DNA of 64,000 bases from Obrimoposthia wandeli (taxonomy: Eukaryota): assembly GCA_977020255.1 (NCBI GenBank), contig CDROCS010000253.1, positions 3,906,001 to 3,970,000 on the forward strand, in the 5' to 3' direction. A model generated the notes under the pieces. The model made no database searches. It worked only from the letters and a program-made list of their open reading frames with translations, and was not told where the DNA came from. Of the stretch, positions 28,402 to 38,175 are shown one piece after another. Positions within the stretch are counted from its first letter, which is position 1; each line of letters opens with the position of its first letter. Made by a program: the position numbers and the translations under genes.

Positions 28402-29406
28402 TTAGTGAGCGTGCGATGCGCCAGCTTTACCTAAATCGGATTTTAGCAAATAGCTATTCATAAGCGCGTACTGTTCACCAGCTTTTAAACCTGAAATCAC
28501 TTGACTAAATTGCCCATCAGTCTGACCAAGTTGTAGTTCTCGCGTTTCATAGCCGCCTTCATTTGTCACGAAGATGATATTTTTTCCTTCAATTTCTTGA
28601 AAGGCACGATTATCAACCACTAGGCTGACATCCACTTGGTGAGTTACTATGCTGCCCGTTAACATTTGTCCTGGTGCCCATAAACCCGTGCTATTATCTA
28701 ATGCCACTCTTGCGGTTATAAACGGCTGCTTCTTATTGGCCATTAAATACATAATGTTTGATTTTGTTGTAGCAACTGTTGAAGAAATAGTAACTTGCTG
28801 ACCTTTGCTAATGACTTGTCGTTGACTTGGAAATATTTTGTATTCAACCCATAACTGCTTATAGTTTTCGACAGTTAGTAGCGGTTGTTGATTGGCCAAT
28901 TCTCCGGGGTTAGCATGGCGTTTGGTTATCACACCTGAAATAGGTGCGGTAATGTTATAACGCGTTAAACTATCGCTTGATTCAACTTGAACAATGTTTT
29001 CACCCGCAGTAACAATATCGCCAACGTTAACGGTTAAATGAGTGATCATTCCAGGAAAGCGGGCGTGCACCTGACTTATTGCACTTGAGTCAATCACCGT
29101 TCGACCATAGACAGTTATCATTTTTTTGATTTGACCTGCATTTGCCGTACCATTGATGATACCTGCTTTTTGCGCATTAGCTTTTGTAATTTCAATATGC
29201 CCATCTTCTTCACCATGTTCATCTTTGTGTTCGCTTTTATGCTCATTTTTATGACCATGGTCATCTGCTGCCATTGCATGGGAACTGATGGCTATGCTGC
29301 CTAACGCAGTTGCTAATAAAAATATAACACTAGGATTTACACTATTTTTAATCGCTTTTTTGTAACCAGTTACTTTGTGACTAGTTTCTCTTTGAAAAAT
29401 TGTCAT
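28402..29406 (-). CDS. czcB: CzcB-type MFP with His-rich segments
   Basis: DDHGHKNEHKSEHKDEH, C-terminal SHAH and MFP fold motifs. Start moved to the Met at 29406. Confidence 0.85.
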   Translation of the reverse strand: MTIFQRETSHKVTGYKKAIKNSVNPSVIFLLATALGSIAISSHAMAADDHGHKNEHKSEHKDEHGEEDGHIEITKANAQKAGIINGTANAGQIKKMITVYGRTVIDSSAISQVHARFPGMITHLTVNVGDIVTAGENIVQVESSDSLTRYNITAPISGVITKRHANPGELANQQPLLTVENYKQLWVEYKIFPSQRQVISKGQQVTISSTVATTKSNIMYLMANKKQPFITARVALDNSTGLWAPGQMLTGSIVTHQVDVSLVVDNRAFQEIEGKNIIFVTNEGGYETRELQLGQTDGQFSQVISGLKAGEQYALMNSYLLKSDLGKAGASHAH

Positions 29407-29416
29407 GAAAAACACC

Positions 29417-30790
29417 TTAAAATGCTTTTTTATTGATGAAGTTGCTTGGTTGCACATGACTGCTCTGTGAAGCAGACAATGGCTCAGCGATAAGTTGTTC
29501 TATTTGTGTGCCATAACGTAAAGCCGCTGCTGCAGATTCAATCATGGCGCGACGAGCAAAGAGCAATTCCTGCCTTGCACTTAAATAATCCAAATAACTA
29601 TAACGGCCGCGTTGGTAGGCTATCTGAGTCTCATTTAACGCCTCTGTTAATGTAGGAACAATGCTATTCCTCAAGCTTTGTGCAGTAAAAATGGCCTGTT
29701 TCCTGTTCGCATAAGCTCGATATAACTGGTTATGTAACGCTAGCATTGTGGCTGCTCTTTTAACGATAACTTCGTCATGCGCGGCTTGTGCAGAACTAAT
29801 AGCACCGGCATTTCGTTTTGAAGAAAACAACGGCATGCTAAACCCAGCAGTTAACGCCGTATCATTTAACACTTGGATTTGCTTAATACCCACCGACCAC
29901 TTTATATCTGCATTGGACTCTGTGCGTGCTAATCTCAACTGAGCCTCTCTTAATCGTTCTTGAGTGGCATAAATTAAAATTTCAGGGTTTTTCTTTACTT
30001 TCGCTAGTAACACTTCAAATTTAATATCCGTTGCAAACTGATATAAATTTCCCTCAACGCGAGTAAATGATGGCGTAGTTTCATTCCACATCATCGCGAG
30101 AGCAACTTTTGCGTAGTCCAGCTGTTGTTGCTCAGACGAGGTTGTAAGTCTGGCATTACCTACTGCGGCCTGTGCTCTTTTTATTTCTGCTGCTGGTGCA
30201 ACACCAGCTCTCAAGCGTTTTTCAACTTCGGTTAACGTGTCCTCAGCCAGTAATATTGCCTCTTTTGCTAATAACAAACGCTCTTGTGCAGCAATTATGT
30301 CAATATACCGACGAGTCACTTCACCTAGCACATTCAGTGCTTCAATTTCACGCATTGCCGCAATTTGTGAACTACGGCCACTAATAACACCAGCACGCGC
30401 TTTTCTTTTATCCCCCAGTTCTAAAATAGAAGAAAGCGACAATGTGAATTCTGTACTATTGAAAACGCCTATATCACCAGTGCCAGCAAAATTCTCCATT
30501 TCAAAACCAACCTCATAAGCGGGTTTTAAGCTTTGACTTTGCAACTGACCTTCAAGAGCCTTCTGGCGAAACTTAAATACCTTAAGTGAGGGATTATCTT
30601 TAAACGTTCGTTTTACCGCTGAAGAAAGTGTTAAGACCTTTTCTTCAGACATTTTCATTTCATTTTTACTGTGCACCAAAGGGCTAAATGCCCAACAAAA
30701 AAGAATAAATAATTGAAGGTAAAACACCCTCGTTGAAGATAACCAAGACATGTTTATTGTCTTTGGAGGCACATTACTAAAATAATGCAT
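29417..30790 (-). CDS. czcC: CzcC/TolC-family outer-membrane channel
   Basis: Two OEP repeats and YQRGRYSYLDYL; first intact gene of the operon. Confidence 0.85.
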   Translation of the reverse strand: MHYFSNVPPKTINMSWLSSTRVFYLQLFILFCWAFSPLVHSKNEMKMSEEKVLTLSSAVKRTFKDNPSLKVFKFRQKALEGQLQSQSLKPAYEVGFEMENFAGTGDIGVFNSTEFTLSLSSILELGDKRKARAGVISGRSSQIAAMREIEALNVLGEVTRRYIDIIAAQERLLLAKEAILLAEDTLTEVEKRLRAGVAPAAEIKRAQAAVGNARLTTSSEQQQLDYAKVALAMMWNETTPSFTRVEGNLYQFATDIKFEVLLAKVKKNPEILIYATQERLREAQLRLARTESNADIKWSVGIKQIQVLNDTALTAGFSMPLFSSKRNAGAISSAQAAHDEVIVKRAATMLALHNQLYRAYANRKQAIFTAQSLRNSIVPTLTEALNETQIAYQRGRYSYLDYLSARQELLFARRAMIESAAAALRYGTQIEQLIAEPLSASQSSHVQPSNFINKKAF

Positions 30791-30799
30791 CTGTATTTC

Positions 30800-31049
30800 C
30801 TATTTTTTGATAAATATATTACAGGTATTTTGTAAAATACCTGTGGAGTTAAAAAAGCTTATAAACATACACTTATGGAGGGCGAAGAAGTCATAAAACA
30901 TATCGAGAGAATCGGCAAGTAAACCACTAGAATTTGCTAACCAACCCACAATAAATTCTAGAAAACAGACTAAAGTTAAGGTTAAGTACAATCCAGAGTA
31001 GCTTTCTTTCACTAGCATTTTTTGCTTCTGCAGCACAAAAACTTGACAT
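30800..31049 (-). pseudogene. Frameshifted, truncated CDF (CzcD-like) cation transporter
   Basis: ATG at 31049 reads MSSFCAAEAKNASERKLLWIVLNLNFSLF. A +1 T then shifts to LEFIVGWLANSSGLLADSLDMFYD, and similarity ends there. Confidence 0.75.
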
Positions 31050-31090
31050 AATAAGCGCCTTTATTCTTGAATAAGGTATTTAATTGAGCC

Positions 31091-31121
31091 ATGATAAACC
31101 TTACTGTTGGAGTAAGGTCAA
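31091..31121 (-). promoter_or_regulatory. MerR-type promoter with operator
   Basis: Minus strand TTGACC-N19-TATCAT with the dyad ACCTTACT-N5-AGTAAGGT (31098-31118) in the spacer. Confidence 0.88.
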
Positions 31122-31126
31122 GCGTT

Positions 31127-31513
31127 ATGAAAATAAATCAACTATCTAAATTAACCAATGTGCTCAGTAAAACCATTCGCTATTATGAGGACGTTGGTTT
31201 ACTTCCTAAAGCATCTCGCAATAGCAATGGTTATCGAAAGTACAGTTCAATCGATGTCGATAACTTGATTTTTATTCGTCGATGTCGAGAGCTACAAATT
31301 CCTCTTGAGAAAATAAAAATATTGATACAAGTACAAACAGACACAACATCATCGTGCAGTGAGGTAGATCTGCTTATTGAGCAACAATTGGATAATGTTC
31401 GTAAGACGATAAACGAGTTGTCATTATTAGAGAAAACGCTACATACGTTAGCAAAGTCTTGTTCAAATGATATTGTTGGGGAATGTGAAATATTGAAAAA
31501 TTTAAAGCAATAA
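31127..31513 (+). CDS. MerR-family metal regulator (ZntR/CadR/PbrR-like)
   Basis: TIRYYEDVGLL HTH and three Cys (SSCSEV, KSC, GECEIL). Start at 31127; the track start overlaps the -10 box. Confidence 0.88.
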   Translation: MKINQLSKLTNVLSKTIRYYEDVGLLPKASRNSNGYRKYSSIDVDNLIFIRRCRELQIPLEKIKILIQVQTDTTSSCSEVDLLIEQQLDNVRKTINELSLLEKTLHTLAKSCSNDIVGECEILKNLKQ

Positions 31514-31521
31514 ATTTACTC

Positions 31522-31560
31522 ATAGTCATTCTATGGTTTGATTATTTAACGCGGTATAAA
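31522..31560 (-). repeat. Internal fragment of type 1 MITE
   Basis: Matches 38586-38625 with one indel and one substitution. Confidence 0.7.
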
Positions 31561-31670
31561 CAGGTTATTGAAGTGTTTTATCAGAGAGATGAATGGTGGA
31601 TTATTTAAGTGAAAACAGGCAACAATGAAAATCATCACCTGTTGTTCTCTAGGAAATATTAGTTGTTTAT

Positions 31671-32873
31671 TTACTCAGGTAAACCAAAAGTATCTACAAC
31701 GTAATCGAGATCTTTATCTCCTCGACCGCTTAAATTAACCAGTACCGATTTTTCTGGGAATTTCTGCGCAAGCTTCATAGCGTAAGCAACCGCATGGGCA
31801 CTTTCTAAAGCAGGGATAATGCCTTCTAATCGACTCAATTCATAAAATGCATCAATACACTCTTTATCCGTAATGCTATCGTAGGTCACTTTATTTAAGT
31901 CTTTTAGCATACTGTGCTCCGGACCTACGCCAGGGTAATCAAGACCACTGGCAATAGAATGCACTGGTGCTGGTTCACCATTTTCATCTTGTAGGATATA
32001 ACATTTAAAACCATGGATAAGACCAGGTTTACCGAGAGTCATCGTGGCCGCATGTTCTCCCATTTTAAAAGACTTGCCGGCAGGCTCAATACCAAACAAT
32101 TGAGTTTCATCATCTTCTAAAAAGGATGAGAAAATTCCCATCGCGTTACTACCGCCGCCAATGCAAGCAACAACGCTGTCAGGTAACTCACCTGTCATAT
32201 CAAAAAATTGTTCCCTCGCTTCAATGCCAATAACACGTTGAAAATCACGCACTATCATTGGAAACGGATGTGGACCTACAACTGATCCTATACAATAAAT
32301 GGTTGAAATAGGGTCTTTAAGGTACGCTTCAAAAGCACTATCTACTGCTTCTTTTAACGTTTTTAAGCCATGAGTTACGGGAATAACAGTTGCCCCTAAT
32401 ACTTTCATGCGCAGTACATTAGGGTACTCTTTCTTAATATCAACTTCGCCCATATGAATTTCGCACTCTAAGCCAAAATAAGCCGCTGCGGTAGCCAATG
32501 CAACACCATGTTGTCCTGCGCCCGTTTCCGCGATGAGCTTCTTTTTACCTAAGTGTTTAGCAAGTAAGGCTTCGCCCATACAATGATTTAACTTATGAGC
32601 ACCAGTATGATTTAAGTCTTCTCTTTTTAAATAAATTTGTCCACCATATTTTTCTGATAAGCGTTGGCAATGATAAACAGGGGTAGGACGGCCTTGATAA
32701 TATTTTCTAATATCACGAAGCTCTGAAATAAATTTATGCGACTTACTGATAGCAAAGTAAGCATCGTTAATTTTTTTCATTTCGTCTTCTAGATTTGGAG
32801 GAATAAAGGCACCACCATATTCATTAAAAAATCCATCTTTGTTCGGGTACTTTTTAAAATAATTCTCTTTCAT
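31671..32873 (-). CDS. trpB: Stand-alone tryptophan synthase beta-chain paralog
   Basis: [13 protein letters not shown] (PLP Lys), [27 protein letters not shown] and LSGRGDKD; no trpA adjacent. Confidence 0.88.
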
Positions 32874-33188: not shown

Positions 33189-33238
33189 TTAATTAAAACA
33201 ATTACCTTGTGTTGAATCAAAGTAATTGTTTTAATTAA
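33189..33238. promoter_or_regulatory. Perfect 17-bp inverted repeat upstream of the DUF1538 operon
   Basis: TTAATTAAAACAATTAC-N16-GTAATTGTTTTAATTAA, followed by TATAAT at 33242-33247. Confidence 0.55.
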
Positions 33239-33276: not shown

Positions 33277-34014
33277 ATGAATCATCAGTTTATCGTTTTT
33301 CTAAAAGCATTATTAGGTAGTTGTAAAGACTTGCTACCCATTATCCTCGTTATTGCATTTTTTCAATTTGCCGTACTGCAACAACCCATGCCTAATATTG
33401 GCGATATTTTAGTTGGCCTGGCATTAGTTGTCCTAGGTTTAACCTTCTTTATTTACGGTTTAGAAATGGGCTTATTTCCCATTGGTGAATCAATGGCGCA
33501 AGCATTCGCCAAAAAAGGCAGCATTAGCTGGTTACTGACTTTTGCCTTTTGTTTGGGATTTGGCACAACGGTGGCTGAGCCTTCATTAATCGCTGTCGCA
33601 AAAGAAGCGGCCATTGTTGCAGCATCAGGTGGAATCATTGCTGATACGTTAGAATCACAACTTTCTTATGCCAATGGTTTACGTTTTACCGTTGCCTTTG
33701 CTGTTGGTTTTGCCATTGTTATTGGTGTATTACGTATACTTCGTGGTTGGCCTATACAATATTTAATTCTGGGCGGTTATGTTGTTGTGGTATTGATGAC
33801 ATTAATTGCTCCTAGCTGGATTATTGGTATTGCATACGATTCTGGTGGCGTTACTACGTCAACGATTACCGTTCCTTTAGTAACAGCATTAGGTGTTGGT
33901 TTAGCCTCTGCAATAAAAGGTAGAAACCCGATGATTGACGGCTTTGGTTTGATTGCTTTTGCCTCATTAACACCAATGATTTTTGTGATGATTTACGGCA
34001 TGGTGATCAGTTAA
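33277..34014 (+). CDS. DUF1538 membrane protein A
   Basis: [20 protein letters not shown] and [10 protein letters not shown] signatures. Confidence 0.85.
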
Positions 34015-34841
34015 TGGATTTATTATTTGAGTTTTTAACCACGTTAAAAAATACCGTTATTGATGTTTTACCTATTCTGTCGATAATTTTAGGCTTTCAA
34101 CTGTTGGTTATTCGCAAACCTATTCCGCACATCAAGCAAGTAGGCTTCGGTTTTATTTATGTACTTATTGGTTTAGCGCTGTTTTTGCTTGGTTTAGAAA
34201 AAGCCTTATTTCCGCTCGGAAAAATGATGGCAGAACAGCTAACCGCACCCGAATTTATTCATGCTGGCGAGCAAGTATTAACAAGCATTCATTGGACCGA
34301 TTATAAGTGGGTTTATATTTTTGCCGCCGCTATTGGTTTTAGTACGACCATTGCAGAACCCTCACTTATTGCCGTAGCCCTTAAAGCCGAAGAAGTTTCA
34401 GGTGGTGCTATTAACGCAAATAGCCTGAGGATTTCAGTCGCTATTGGCGTTGCTTTTGGTATCGCTTTAGGGAGCTATCGCATCGTCGTTGGTCACCCTA
34501 TTCATTATTATATTATTGCTGGTTATATTGTTGTGGTCATTCAAACTTTTTATTGTCCTAAGCTTATAGTGCCATTGGCCTATGATTCTGGTGGGGTAAC
34601 AACGTCTACCGTAACCGTTCCTTTAGTTGCGGCTTTGGGGTTAGGTTTAGCCAGTACCATTCCTGGGCGTAGTCCTTTGATTGATGGCTTTGGTTTAATC
34701 GCTTTCGCTAGTTTATGTCCAATCATAGCGGTAATGGCTTATGCACAACTATCTGAAGCCAAAGCACACAGAGTCAATAAAAGATTAGAAAAAAGAAAAA
34801 GAATTAAACAAGAAAAAAAAGATAAACGTAACTTAAATTAA
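34014..34841 (+). CDS. DUF1538 membrane protein B
   Basis: [20 protein letters not shown] and [10 protein letters not shown]; TAATG overlap with gene A; basic C-terminal tail. Confidence 0.85.
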   Translation: MDLLFEFLTTLKNTVIDVLPILSIILGFQLLVIRKPIPHIKQVGFGFIYVLIGLALFLLGLEKALFPLGKMMAEQLTAPEFIHAGEQVLTSIHWTDYKWVYIFAAAIGFSTTIAEPSLIAVALKAEEVSGGAINANSLRISVAIGVAFGIALGSYRIVVGHPIHYYIIAGYIVVVIQTFYCPKLIVPLAYDSGGVTTSTVTVPLVAALGLGLASTIPGRSPLIDGFGLIAFASLCPIIAVMAYAQLSEAKAHRVNKRLEKRKRIKQEKKDKRNLN

Positions 34842-34899
34842 ACAGAAATAACAAGACTTCTTAAATAGTCTACATAAGACAAATAAAACAGGTGATCAC

Positions 34900-35250
34900 A
34901 TGCAATTCAAATTAATTGTTGCCTTTGTTGACGACGCTGTCACAGACGACGTTATGAAAGGCGCAAGAATGGCTGGCGCAACAGGCGCAACCATAATAAA
35001 TAATGCTAGGGGCGAAGGTATAAAGCGCCAACACACTTTTTTTGGCATGCAACTCGAAACACAAAGGGATGTATTACTGTTTGTGGTTGAACAACACTTA
35101 TCAAGAAAAATACTTGAACGAATTAGCAAGATTGCTGGTTTTGATGAAGACCCTGGTAAAGGTATTGCAATTCAATTAAATGTTGAAGATGCGGTAGGCG
35201 TAGCTCATCAAGTAGAGCGCTTAAAAGGTAAAATCGAGGAAGAGCTATGA
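34900..35250 (+). CDS. P-II family signalling protein (non-GlnB/GlnK)
   Basis: GATGAT..ARGEG and B-loop PGKGIA; no uridylylatable Tyr in the T-loop. Confidence 0.82.
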   Translation: MQFKLIVAFVDDAVTDDVMKGARMAGATGATIINNARGEGIKRQHTFFGMQLETQRDVLLFVVEQHLSRKILERISKIAGFDEDPGKGIAIQLNVEDAVGVAHQVERLKGKIEEEL

Positions 35251-35642
35251 GCCATAAGTTTGTACAAGTCAAAGATGTAATGACCACCAATAACTATCAA
35301 TTTGCTGATGGTATGATGACCGTCGCTGAAGGTATTAAATTAGCTAAAGAGCATAATATTAGCGCGTTAATTATTAATAAACGTAATGAACAAGATGAAT
35401 ACGGTTTAGTCATGCTTGCTGATATTGCCAAAGAAGTACTGGCAAAAGATCGTTCACCTGATCGCGTGAACTTATATGAAATAATGACAAAACCTTTGGT
35501 CAGTGTATTACCTGATATGGATGTAAGATATTGCGCACGATTATTTGAGCGTTTAAGTATCCACCTTGCACCTGTTATTGAAAATAAGAATATTATTGGT
35601 ATGGTTGATTATACCAATATGGTTTTTAGCCAAGTTGAATAA
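35247..35642 (+). CDS. CBS-pair protein
   Basis: VKDVMT...EIMTKP tandem CBS; ATGA overlap with the P-II gene. Confidence 0.85.
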   Translation: MSHKFVQVKDVMTTNNYQFADGMMTVAEGIKLAKEHNISALIINKRNEQDEYGLVMLADIAKEVLAKDRSPDRVNLYEIMTKPLVSVLPDMDVRYCARLFERLSIHLAPVIENKNIIGMVDYTNMVFSQVE

Positions 35643-36050
35643 CGTGTACTGAGATAGATAGTTTTTACCGCATTTTTGCCGTAATGTAATGACTCAACAA
35701 TGCTGAAACATCAATCTTATATGATAACGAAAATAACAGTACTCTTAGCAGTCAAATATCCACATTTGATTGCTAATTTTTTGTGTGCCTTTCAATTTTT
35801 AATAAAACTAAACCCTCATAAATAAGCCCCCTTTCCCTTCGCACAACAAGTATCACAAACTTAATGAAAATGGTATTAGTCTTATTTCAATATTTTATAC
35901 TGCCATAAACCGTTCATTTTGTGATTTATACTCCCTTATAGCGATCACTTAGATAACAAGTCAGGCATAAATATTTACAGGCATTGCTCTCTTGTTGGTA
36001 TTTCAATAGTGATGCGATTGGTCAAGTTATAGAAGCGAATAAACGCCCTA

Positions 36051-36132: not shown

Positions 36133-38175
36133 TTGGAATTTTCTGAAGATGATTTATTTGAACAAGGCCCGGTAGTTTGTTTCACTTGGCAGCTTACGCC
36201 AGGCTGGCCTGTGTTAAAAGTAACAAATAATATTCGTCAATTTGGTTACGAACCAGCGGAGTTCTTATCAAAAAAGTTACTCTTTTCTGAGATATTACAC
36301 CCGGACGATTTAGACCGTATTACTAATGAAATGAGAACATTCTTAGAGGGTGATATCGTTCATTTTGAACAGGATTATCGAATAATCACCAAAAGTGGTG
36401 AGGTTCGCTGGGTCTATGACAAAACGATGCTAAAAAAAGATGTTACAGGGCTGCCAACTCACGCGAAAGGTTATCTGCTCGATATAACGGAGCGCAAGCT
36501 AGCAGAACAGGAACTACGCGAGTCCTCAGAAAAATACTATCAGCTCTTTGATAAAAATAAGGCGATTGAGTTACTGATAGATCCCAATACTCAAAAAATC
36601 ATCAAAGCCAATGCTGCTGCTGAAATATTCTACGGCTATAACAAAATAGAATTCAATAACTTATCTATCAGCGATATCAATGTACTGTCAATTGAAACAA
36701 TAGAGGCAGAAATAGAACTAGCACTAAACGAAAAACGTGATTATTTTAATTTTAGACATCAACTTAAAAATGGCGAAATAAGAGATGTTTGTGTCTATTC
36801 AGGGCCTTTAATAATAGCTGGGCGTAAGGTGCTTTATTCAATTATCCATGATATAACAGATCAGCGTCAGGCCGAAAAATCCCTTGTGCAAAGCGAACAA
36901 AAATTTCGCTCTTTTATCGAAACAACCTCAGAAGGATTTTTAATTCTTACAGCACAATTACAGATCAATTTTGCTAATACCGCCATTTGCCAACTAGCAG
37001 GTTATTCATTAGCTGAAATGAGGGGGAAATCGGTATTATATTTCGTCACCTCTGAATCACGTAGTCAATTACGAAAGCAATTGAGTATGGCGCATGCACA
37101 CTCACATCTAGCTGCAGAGTTAATATTACGTCACAAACATGGTCATCACGTGTTTATTCGCTACAAGGCGACAGTGATGGCTGATGGCGCAGGTTTTTTT
37201 ACTTATATTACCGATATTACCGAACGAAAACTGAAAGAAGTTGAACTCAAAACATTAACCAGTGCAATAAAACATAGCGCCAGTTCAATTATTATCACCG
37301 ATAAAAATGGCATTATCGAATACGTTAATCCCCGCTTTTGTGTGGTAACTGGTTACAGTGAGCAAGAAGTTATTGGTCAGACGCCAAGCATAATTAGTAC
37401 CGCGAATACCCAAACAGAGCTACATAACGAATTATGGAAAACTATTCTTGCTGGTGATGATTGGCATGGTGAAACTTATAACTGCACCAAAAATGGTGAG
37501 TTTTATTGGTCGATGATGTCAATTTCACCGATTATGAATGAGGATGGAGAAATCAGTCAGTTTGTTAGTGTTAGTCAGGATATAACTGAGCATAAATCTA
37601 AGCATTTAAAAATGGAAGCATTAGCGCTAAGAGATCCCTTAACAGGTTTAGCAAATCGCCGTTTGTTCGATGATCGCCTTAACCAAGCTATGCAAATTGT
37701 CAGTCGTCAAAACCGAAACGGTATCGGACTTATCATGCTCGATCTTGATCACTTTAAAGATATCAATGATACCTATGGTCATGACGTAGGTGATTTGTTA
37801 TTAAAGGAAGTCGCACGAAAATTACTCTTGTGTACTCGTAGAGAAGATACCGTGTCACGTTTTGGAGGAGACGAGTTTATAATACTGTTACAGGAAGTTA
37901 GTCTCATACTTGATGCTCTACAAGTGGCTGAAAATATTCTTCAGTCTTTATGTGAGCCCATTCATGTAGGCGGTTACACCTTTTCAATCACTTGTAGTCT
38001 AGGTGTTTGTCTTGCACCTCAAGATGGTAATACCTCAACTCAATTATTAAAAGCCGTAGATCTTGCCTTATATCAGGCAAAAATAGCTGGCCGTAATAAT
38101 ATACAGTTATATAACTCAGCGATCCCTCAAATGAGCGACAGCAAAAAGAGTTCCACACAAGTACTTTGTCCCTAG
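36133..38175 (+). CDS. Cytoplasmic diguanylate cyclase (4 PAS + GGDEF)
   Basis: Four PAS/PAC units ending in DIT; RREDTVSRFGGDEF with intact A-site and I-site; TTG start with GGGAG RBS. Confidence 0.9.
   Translation: MEFSEDDLFEQGPVVCFTWQLTPGWPVLKVTNNIRQFGYEPAEFLSKKLLFSEILHPDDLDRITNEMRTFLEGDIVHFEQDYRIITKSGEVRWVYDKTMLKKDVTGLPTHAKGYLLDITERKLAEQELRESSEKYYQLFDKNKAIELLIDPNTQKIIKANAAAEIFYGYNKIEFNNLSISDINVLSIETIEAEIELALNEKRDYFNFRHQLKNGEIRDVCVYSGPLIIAGRKVLYSIIHDITDQRQAEKSLVQSEQKFRSFIETTSEGFLILTAQLQINFANTAICQLAGYSLAEMRGKSVLYFVTSESRSQLRKQLSMAHAHSHLAAELILRHKHGHHVFIRYKATVMADGAGFFTYITDITERKLKEVELKTLTSAIKHSASSIIITDKNGIIEYVNPRFCVVTGYSEQEVIGQTPSIISTANTQTELHNELWKTILAGDDWHGETYNCTKNGEFYWSMMSISPIMNEDGEISQFVSVSQDITEHKSKHLKMEALALRDPLTGLANRRLFDDRLNQAMQIVSRQNRNGIGLIMLDLDHFKDINDTYGHDVGDLLLKEVARKLLLCTRREDTVSRFGGDEFIILLQEVSLILDALQVAENILQSLCEPIHVGGYTFSITCSLGVCLAPQDGNTSTQLLKAVDLALYQAKIAGRNNIQLYNSAIPQMSDSKKSSTQVLCP

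Follow-up and report, generated by a model that had tools for sequence, protein, structure and literature searches.

What is the function of an operon in which two paralogous membrane proteins of the DUF1538 family are followed by a divergent P-II-like signaling protein and a stand-alone CBS-pair protein, and to what extent has such a system been described before? This question is raised by the locus at positions 33277-35642 of a 64,000-nucleotide stretch of DNA (positions 3,906,001 to 3,970,000 of contig CDROCS010000253.1, assembly GCA_977020255.1, filed under Obrimoposthia wandeli), the whole of which is referred to here as the window. A previous reading of these letters, made without database searches (the sequence-only reading), had proposed an uncharacterized secondary transporter without a named substrate, placed under double adenylate-charge control. 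In this work, we present comparative genomics, profile searches and structure models which suggest, with a probability of roughly 60%, that the operon encodes a UmpAB-type monovalent cation/proton antiporter gated by dedicated P-II-like and CBS ligand sensors. The DUF1538/UmpAB transporter family and the gating of transporters by P-II are already known; the novelty is the obligate partnership of P-II plus CBS with UmpAB/DUF1538, of which the literature searched on DUF1538/UmpAB and P-II-like partners contains no description. Thus, the term uncharacterized holds for the partnership, but not for the membrane pair, which is homologous to UmpAB (PMC5484666).

Gene order and exclusive linkage

Four consecutive plus-strand open reading frames (ORFs) span the locus, with coordinates matching those of the sequence-only reading in the ORF list, and a terminator-like element lies downstream of them:

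33277-34014, plus strand: gene A, umpA-like DUF1538 membrane subunit, 245 aa (PF07556, E 1.2e-68; NCBIfam UmpA match)
34014-34841, plus strand: gene B, umpB-like DUF1538 membrane subunit, 275 aa (PF07556, E 1.2e-68; NCBIfam UmpB match)
34900-35250, plus strand: divergent P-II-like signaling protein, 116 aa (PF00543, 36.8 bits)
35247-35642, plus strand: stand-alone CBS-pair protein, 131 aa (two Pfam CBS stretches)
35745-35776, plus strand: terminator-like hairpin (13-pair stem, 6-nt loop) with a T run behind it (tail TTTTTTGTGT)

The tight linkage and both overlaps described by the sequence-only reading are exact in the ORFs and in the sequence: the stop codon of A (TAA) overlaps the start codon of B (ATG) as TAATG at 34012-34016, and the stop codon of the P-II gene (TGA) overlaps the start codon of the CBS gene (ATG) as ATGA at 35247-35250, the CBS gene being probably translationally coupled to the P-II gene. 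The spacer between B and the P-II gene is 58 bp long and contains the ribosome-binding site AGGTGA. A hairpin scan revealed no terminator-like site on the plus strand between the four genes, and the hairpin at 35745-35776, approximately 100 bp past the CBS stop codon, likely marks the end of the operon.

This arrangement was found to be widely conserved. Among the 80 closest loci from species-representative genomes, in which A is 68-100% identical, the order A, B, P-II, CBS is kept, on a single strand, in 74; these 80 loci correspond to the genera Vibrio, Enterovibrio, Photobacterium, Moritella, Psychromonas, Hahella, Thiomicrorhabdus, Sedimenticola, Cycloclasticus and Methylophaga, and also to Beggiatoaceae, Nitrospirota, Gallionellaceae and Rhodospirillales. 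Vibrio harveyi carries the module too (L055). For three of the six exceptions, the contig is short and breaks off shortly past the last detected gene; the others are one locus without CBS (L026) and two metagenome-assembled genomes (MAGs) of Beggiatoaceae with A only. A Candidatus Parabeggiatoa MAG (L029:5997-9707, plus strand) presents A followed by a 1236-aa ORF that is neither B, P-II nor CBS, which may reflect an insertion or a misassembly. In a sample of 301 genomes of the Pseudomonadales-order, which contains Hahella, the P-II gene is adjacent in all of the 30 best loci and the four genes are present in 28; likewise, DUF1538 was found in 10 of 201 sampled Nitrospirota genomes, with P-II and CBS downstream in 10/10. 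One Nitrospirota locus (L159/L169; G328:C97:8626-10703) carries three consecutive DUF1538 genes, then P-II and CBS. The spacing between genes is also maintained, with medians over 103 four-gene loci of -1 (A/B), +10 (B/P-II) and -4 (P-II/CBS), a largest B/P-II gap of 102 nt, and a P-II/CBS overlap in 99 of the 103, the window displaying the same 4-nt overlap. With gaps of this size, and 58 bp in the window, a 57-aa peptide gene does not fit between B and P-II.

Furthermore, the linkage is exclusive in both directions. Within the 301 genomes, DUF1538 occurs in 62 (roughly a fifth), all of which carry an adjacent P-II-like gene or domain. Conversely, the P-II subfamily produced 66 strong matches (E <= 1e-10) in 59 genomes, each of them within 800 bp of DUF1538, and the other three DUF1538 genomes possess a more divergent P-II-containing neighbor. 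The CBS subfamily displayed 46 matches of at least 94.7 bits, all adjoining these P-II genes, and the next CBS scores (at most 72 bits) come from genomes without DUF1538; a dedicated CBS gene is present in approximately 71% of the DUF1538 genomes, the rest having P-II alone. The subtypes of transporter and P-II are correlated (Spearman 0.76, n=64), a value that, given the relatedness of the loci, attests to co-inheritance but is no independent statistic. In 58 loci, no other neighbor was present in more than 13, leaving no candidate for a fifth conserved gene, and no carbon- or nitrogen-assimilation genes were conserved nearby. The four-gene arrangement is far beyond chance, and these data support the four genes as one conserved functional unit, in line with the expectation of the sequence-only reading that they would be found together in other genomes.

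The association extends to single polypeptides. Fused A-B proteins of approximately 500 aa precede P-II and CBS in 6/6 loci, and proteins composed of DUF1538, DUF1538 and P-II are encoded at L009:4415-6382 (minus strand), L015:4942-6996 (plus strand) and L145:2569-4545 (minus strand). The latter type is abundant in Campylobacterota/Arcobacteraceae, with 4414 clusters at E<1e-5, and nearly all of the best 120 of these clusters combine PF07556 and PF00543. Fusions between DUF1538 and P-II constitute classic evidence for a physical association of P-II and transporter; in some sources the DUF1538x2-P-II proteins are labeled 'nitrogen regulatory protein PII'. Additionally, fused DUF1538 genes of 620-680 aa adjoin proteins of approximately 380-450 aa with three tandem P-II-like repeats, in which one clear P-II (Pfam, ~38 bits) stands between two weaker P-II-like/HisG_C-like repeats. 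Judging from this repeat pattern, they may correspond to a covalent, single-chain pseudo-trimeric P-II, and no CBS gene was found at any of their loci:

L135:1702-2973 (minus strand), L136, L137, L138, L139, L140 and L143: triple-repeat P-II loci

One fused DUF1538 gene (L018; G000:C6367:2225-3760, minus strand) contains 19 in-frame TGA codons, and therefore its contig probably belongs to an organism reading TGA as sense; the subfamily profiles detected no P-II or CBS gene beside it.

The membrane pair and its characterized relatives

Both membrane proteins match PF07556 (cut-off 22.6 bits) over their full length, A with 231 bits across profile positions 1-211 and B with 231.1 bits across positions 1-210, and they are approximately 51% identical to each other, B differing by a loop insertion and by a C-terminal tail rich in Lys/Arg. 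Among the NCBIfam models, A scores best on UmpA (NF041627, 370.7 bits) and B on UmpB (NF041628, 352.6 bits), for which the equivalog cut-offs are 490 and 500, respectively. At the sequence level, the A/B pair is thus a homologue of UmpAB and not an equivalog by the NCBI standard. UmpAB of Halomonas zhaodongensis was described in 2017 as a DUF1538 pair with Na+(Li+,K+)/H+ antiporter activity: the co-expressed proteins rescue E. coli KNabc on NaCl, on LiCl and at alkaline pH, they form a heterodimer, their antiport in everted vesicles is pH-dependent, and seven transmembrane segments (TMS) are predicted for each subunit (PMC5484666). Given this homology, a substrate can probably be assigned to A/B, and the blank left by the sequence-only reading on this point is outdated.

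In that study only umpAB was cloned, within a 4.2-kb insert holding no complete ORF past umpB, and P-II and CBS are mentioned 0 times (PMC5484666). One genome in the 301-genome sample (G216) reaches the UmpB equivalog cut-off, with 500.1 bits, and its locus comprises, on one strand, P-II', A, B, P-II, CBS, fused-AB, P-II and CBS; the A, B, P-II and CBS proteins of the window are 61, 59, 58 and 46% identical, respectively, to those of the first of these modules. We infer that P-II and CBS genes likely follow the characterized Halomonas umpAB itself. The two genomes with the highest UmpB scores (locus L147, at G216:C16:309000-322000, and locus L100, in G055) contain two complete tandem modules and an extra upstream P-II-like gene, in the order just given.

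The AlphaFold2 (AF2) model of A (predicted local distance difference test, pLDDT, 87) contains seven membrane helices, two of which are broken, at residues 99-102 and 192-198. These breaks coincide with the motifs TTxAEP (residues 97-102) and GGVTTS (residues 190-195), and TTVAEPSL / TTIAEPSL and YDSGGVTTS are present across the two paralogues, so that the shared Gly/Thr-rich motifs which the sequence-only reading took for helix breakers do lie, in the model of A, where two membrane helices are interrupted. Both paralogues keep the acidic residues D18, E63, E101, D188 and D221 without exception, and invariant membrane-embedded Asp/Glu residues suit a cation/proton path.

Regarding topology, the distribution of Lys plus Arg residues (K+R) is opposite in the two subunits: in A the positive charge is almost entirely on one side (8.2 vs 0.8), and in B it is mainly on the side opposite to that of A (3.8 vs 8.2). 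The halves of 27 A-B fusion proteins display the same pattern (9.0 vs 1.5 and 4.4 vs 8.7) and are joined by linkers of only 22-24 residues. The predicted topology is N-in/C-out for A and N-out/C-in for B. The opposite charge bias together with the short linkers points to an antiparallel A/B dimer; with seven helices per half and a short fused linker, the halves must be antiparallel, which would place the C-terminus of B, the point of P-II fusion, in the cytoplasm.

As for the fold, a sequence profile search of the PDB with A returned no real relative. With the A model, Foldseek produced a best match of E 0.46 and VIA-align wide a best Z of 6.4 with helical hairpins only, and neither search gave a match to SbtA, NhaA or an elevator protein, which leaves the resemblance to SbtA/elevator folds raised by the sequence-only reading without a counterpart in these searches. 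The Atlas shape search with the same model returned DUF1538 clusters only, the Protein Atlas feature search nothing besides DUF1538, and the comparison of the N and C halves of A by hhalign found no internal repeat (probability 0.4). The DUF1538 subunit model thus matches no solved fold, and structure searches on a model cannot prove that a fold is new.

The P-II-like and CBS proteins and the flanking sequence

The third protein of the operon is assigned to PF00543 with 36.8 bits (cut-off 25 bits). Its AF2 model (pLDDT 81) displays a beta-alpha-beta-beta-alpha-beta core with an extra C-terminal helix, and the T-loop appears as a flexible, low-confidence hairpin (residues 37-55). GlnK, GlnB and CPII were the top Foldseek matches to this model (E 1e-6 to 1e-7, probability 1.00), and the subfamily profile matches solved P-II proteins (E 3.8e-7), the best of them being chain H of the 12-chain entry 9p1x (105 aa), named 'P-II family nitrogen regulatory protein'. 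The protein is presumably a homotrimer.

Residue conservation was assessed over 44 family members. The GATGAT segment, which equals the canonical GxxGxT, is conserved with G26, A27 and G29 invariant; R37-G38-x-G40 at the base of the T-loop and G88 are conserved, and the consensus of the T-loop apex is TFFG, with G49 invariant. The motifs ARGEG and PGKG, which the sequence-only reading had considered as retained for nucleotide binding, are both present in the window protein, but this interpretation stands only in part: the second Gly is the sole invariant residue of PGKG, its Lys, aligned with D88, is not conserved (family consensus PGTG), the canonical K/R90 aligns with Ile, and the R101/R103 region reads VEDAVGVxHQ, with no Arg. 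In canonical P-II proteins, K90, R101 and R103 bind the ATP phosphates and 2-oxoglutarate. Therefore, with GxxGxT, RG and G88 kept and these three residues gone, a nucleotide-type cleft is plausible and the usual Mg-ATP/2-oxoglutarate chemistry is not. In agreement with the sequence-only reading, the Tyr modified by GlnD is missing: the T-loop (IKRQHTFFGMQLETQ) contains neither Tyr nor Ser, and hence has no counterpart of the modifiable Tyr51 (or Ser49) at the apex of the GlnB/GlnK loop. The subfamily does not display the linkage to amtB or nitrogen-assimilation genes of canonical P-II proteins, all its 66 strong matches in the order sample adjoining DUF1538. Nor does it group with the SbtB type, which is defined by sbtA linkage and close SbtB similarity, as its neighbor is DUF1538 and SbtB is a marginal match (E 0.04, residues 6-44 only).

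The last protein is a free CBS pair, as had been read from the letters, with PF00571 found in two stretches (56.3 bits). Among solved structures, it comes closest to the CBS pair of the cyanobacterial CBS-CP12 protein (5nmu, E 2.6e-24, residues 6-128 aligned). On its own, that CBS part dimerizes and binds AMP, with no binding of ADP, ATP or cAMP (PMC6142219). The window protein is presumably a dimer as well, and in its subfamily the segment between the two domains is highly conserved (DRSPERVNVYEIM).

Upstream of the operon, one further element was identified:

33189-33238, no strand: AT-rich inverted repeat (21-nt arms, 8-nt gap), 39 bp 5' of A

Its arms (33189-33209 and 33218-33238) are 95% complementary, and its core is kept in a second Colwellia (L020) and not in Thalassotalea; tentatively, we consider it part of the unit, as a candidate operator or a hairpin of the 5' untranslated region or leader. 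An upstream riboswitch was rejected, as Rfam at permissive E-values returned no family for this region and chance snoRNA matches only. A putative FNR/CRP site at 33207-33220 was also discarded, since it has 2 mismatches and is 1 of 115 such matches in the window, not above chance. Further 5' within the window (28402-32873) lie an HlyD/OEP efflux pair, a MerR regulator and a divergent pyridoxal phosphate-dependent (PALP) enzyme, and on the 3' side (36133-38175) a triple-PAS GGDEF diguanylate cyclase. The PALP, MerR and HlyD/OEP genes are not conserved neighbors of the module in other genomes; the same applies to the PAS-GGDEF gene, and a link to cyclic di-GMP was consequently dropped. With respect to its origin, the A protein is 100% identical to a protein of Colwellia demingiae ACAM 459, and the window DNA comes from a Colwellia. 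The source assembly (1.35 Gb, 6912 contigs) contains 11 separate DUF1538 loci of differing subtypes, and thus represents a mixture of many organisms rather than one genome.

Proposed mechanism, rival explanations and known systems

In the mechanism that we propose, A and B, seven-helix paralogues inserted oppositely, would form an antiparallel, pseudo-symmetric heterodimer, in which the two broken helices of each subunit (TTxAEP and DSGGVTTS) and the invariant acidic residues would build the ion path. The P-II-like protein (presumably a trimer, with a conserved T-loop, RGEG...TFFG) and the CBS protein (presumably a dimer), made in fixed proportion from overlapping genes, would dock on the cytoplasmic face of the transporter and switch transport, most likely inhibiting it, upon a small-ligand signal. 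The ligand may plausibly be an adenine nucleotide, AMP or ADP, reporting the energy state, in which case the double adenylate-charge control of the sequence-only reading could apply; the ligand itself, like the docking and the sense in which transport is regulated, is our inference. Such switching would resemble that of GlnK on AmtB and of SbtB on SbtA, both of which are inhibitory (PMC10710835). Since UmpAB is active alone in E. coli, P-II and CBS would be modulators and not essential subunits, and, considering the inhibitory role of GlnK and SbtB, most likely ligand-dependent brakes.

Several points weigh against a gated antiporter. Both membrane subunits fall below the equivalog cut-offs (370.7 vs 490 and 352.6 vs 500), and the antiport assignment derives from one heterologous study of a homologue of approximately 60% identity (PMC5484666). 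The flanks of the G216 locus differ from those of the published Halomonas insert, and therefore the placement of P-II and CBS beside the characterized umpAB stays indirect. Adenylate binding by the P-II-like protein is not assured, given the missing phosphate-binding residues K90, R101 and R103, and the CBS partner is missing in approximately 29% of DUF1538 genomes, which makes CBS an accessory component. The evidence for binding of P-II to A/B is indirect throughout; a prediction of the complex of A, B and P-II in which alignments were not used gave a score of 0.00, that is, no answer, and counts neither for nor against binding. In addition, P-II is three-fold symmetric and A/B pseudo-two-fold, a geometric puzzle given that the known P-II-gated channels are trimeric and that P-II control may be restricted to trimeric transporters (PMC10710835). 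The 1:1 DUF1538x2-P-II fusions would fit a trimer of A/B units, and a single P-II body for each unit would agree with the triple-P-II proteins.

Three rival explanations were considered. The same architecture might serve another substrate, such as bicarbonate, ammonium, K+ or an organic anion, with the P-II-like protein reporting the matching metabolic state, as in SbtB/bicarbonate and GlnK/ammonium. In a 2023 review, every transporter given as P-II-gated (AmtB, SbtA, and the nitrate and urea ABC systems of cyanobacteria) moves a nitrogen or carbon nutrient (PMC10710835), many close homologues belong to chemolithoautotrophs (Thiomicrorhabdus, Beggiatoaceae, Sedimenticola, Gallionellaceae, Nitrospirota), and both the sub-equivalog scores and the reliance on a single complementation and everted-vesicle study leave room for this possibility. 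Nevertheless, we consider it unlikely, since all four proteins are approximately 60% identical to those of a locus with an equivalog-scoring UmpB, the invariant membrane-embedded Asp/Glu residues are typical of cation/proton exchangers, the module is present in many marine heterotrophs (Vibrio, Colwellia, Moritella, Hahella), nearby carbon- or nitrogen-assimilation genes are not conserved, and SbtB matches the P-II subfamily only marginally.

It is considerably less probable that the role of the transporter is that of a sensor or anchor in the membrane, from which the P-II-like and CBS proteins would be sequestered and released by ion flux or ligand to act on other cytoplasmic targets, as AmtB-bound GlnK does. 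In its favor, AmtB is well established to sequester GlnK (PMC10710835), UmpAB needs no partners to work in E. coli (PMC5484666), and the enzyme that CBS-CP12 controls through its CBS pair is a soluble one (PMC6142219); but members of the P-II and CBS subfamilies were in no case found apart from DUF1538, the frequent covalent fusion of P-II to the transporter prevents release, and no gene for a third-party target is conserved nearby. Obligate co-occurrence, probable translational coupling and the loss of K90, R101 and R103 could also be explained if the P-II-like and CBS proteins were structural or assembly subunits conferring stability or activity in the native host instead of ligand switches. 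We regard this as very improbable in view of the activity of UmpAB alone in E. coli (PMC5484666), the strong conservation of the T-loop and of the GxxGxT / RG / G88 cleft framework, and the absence of CBS from whole subtypes.

Few signal processors are as widespread in bacteria as P-II proteins, and the module described here ranges over approximately a fifth of the sampled Pseudomonadales-order genomes, Vibrio, Colwellia, sulfur oxidizers, Nitrospirota and Campylobacterota. UmpAB/DUF1538 is absent from the list of P-II-regulated transporters in the 2023 review (PMC10710835). If the gating of an antiporter proposed above is correct, it would provide a new route joining ion and pH homeostasis to a metabolic signal, the view that P-II targets are trimers would be called into question or refined, and the sole published UmpAB assays would have measured a deregulated transporter. 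On a more tentative level, with the odds somewhat short of even, UmpAB-PII-CBS may stand beside AmtB-GlnK and SbtA-SbtB as a third major widespread class of P-II-gated secondary transporters, and as the first in which the target is a cation/proton antiporter, an antiparallel heterodimer of structurally unsolved fold, controlled jointly with a dedicated CBS sensor. P-II would then link a metabolic ligand to Na+/pH homeostasis, and the triple-P-II and transporter-P-II fusions would represent natural experiments on stoichiometry. The membrane subunits, having no solved relative and the look of an antiparallel gene-duplicated pair, are attractive for structural work.

Compared with known systems, the window pair resembles UmpAB in consisting of paired DUF1538 paralogues with overlapping stop and start codons and seven predicted TMS each, and in its identity of approximately 60% to the locus with the equivalog-scoring UmpB, which carries P-II and CBS directly downstream; it differs in scoring below the equivalog cut-offs, and antiport, demonstrated for the Halomonas pair, is predicted here. 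The likeness to GlnK-AmtB lies in a P-II-fold protein encoded beside a membrane transporter and co-inherited with it, in a T-loop that could enter the cytoplasmic face, and in a transporter that is active without its partner. In contrast to GlnK, the window protein has neither the uridylylation Tyr nor K90, R101 and R103, and possesses an extra C-terminal helix; its predicted target is a heterodimeric cation/proton antiporter of unrelated fold and not a homotrimeric channel such as AmtB, and a second sensor (CBS) is added. With SbtB-SbtA it shares a P-II-like protein of non-canonical type that is tied to a single secondary transporter of its own operon, and adenylate-dependent inhibition serves as the working analogy; the similarity to SbtB is, however, marginal (E 0.04), the C-terminal redox loop is replaced by a terminal helix, and the DUF1538 subunit model has no match to SbtA in Foldseek or VIA-align. 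The CBS protein, whose sequence is closest among solved structures to CBS-CP12 (5nmu), differs from it in having no CP12 domain, and hence no basis for a hexamer, and its partner is a transporter plus P-II module rather than phosphoribulokinase. Finally, paired membrane proteins of opposite topology, such as the small multidrug resistance (SMR) pair EbrAB, the Fluc/CrcB pairs and DUF606, were reportedly described by Rapp et al. in 2006. Like A and B, these are adjacent paralogous genes with opposite K+R bias, also found fused in a single protein; unlike them, the DUF1538 units have seven helices, so that their fusion needs no extra linker helix, and the topology of the window pair is a predicted one.

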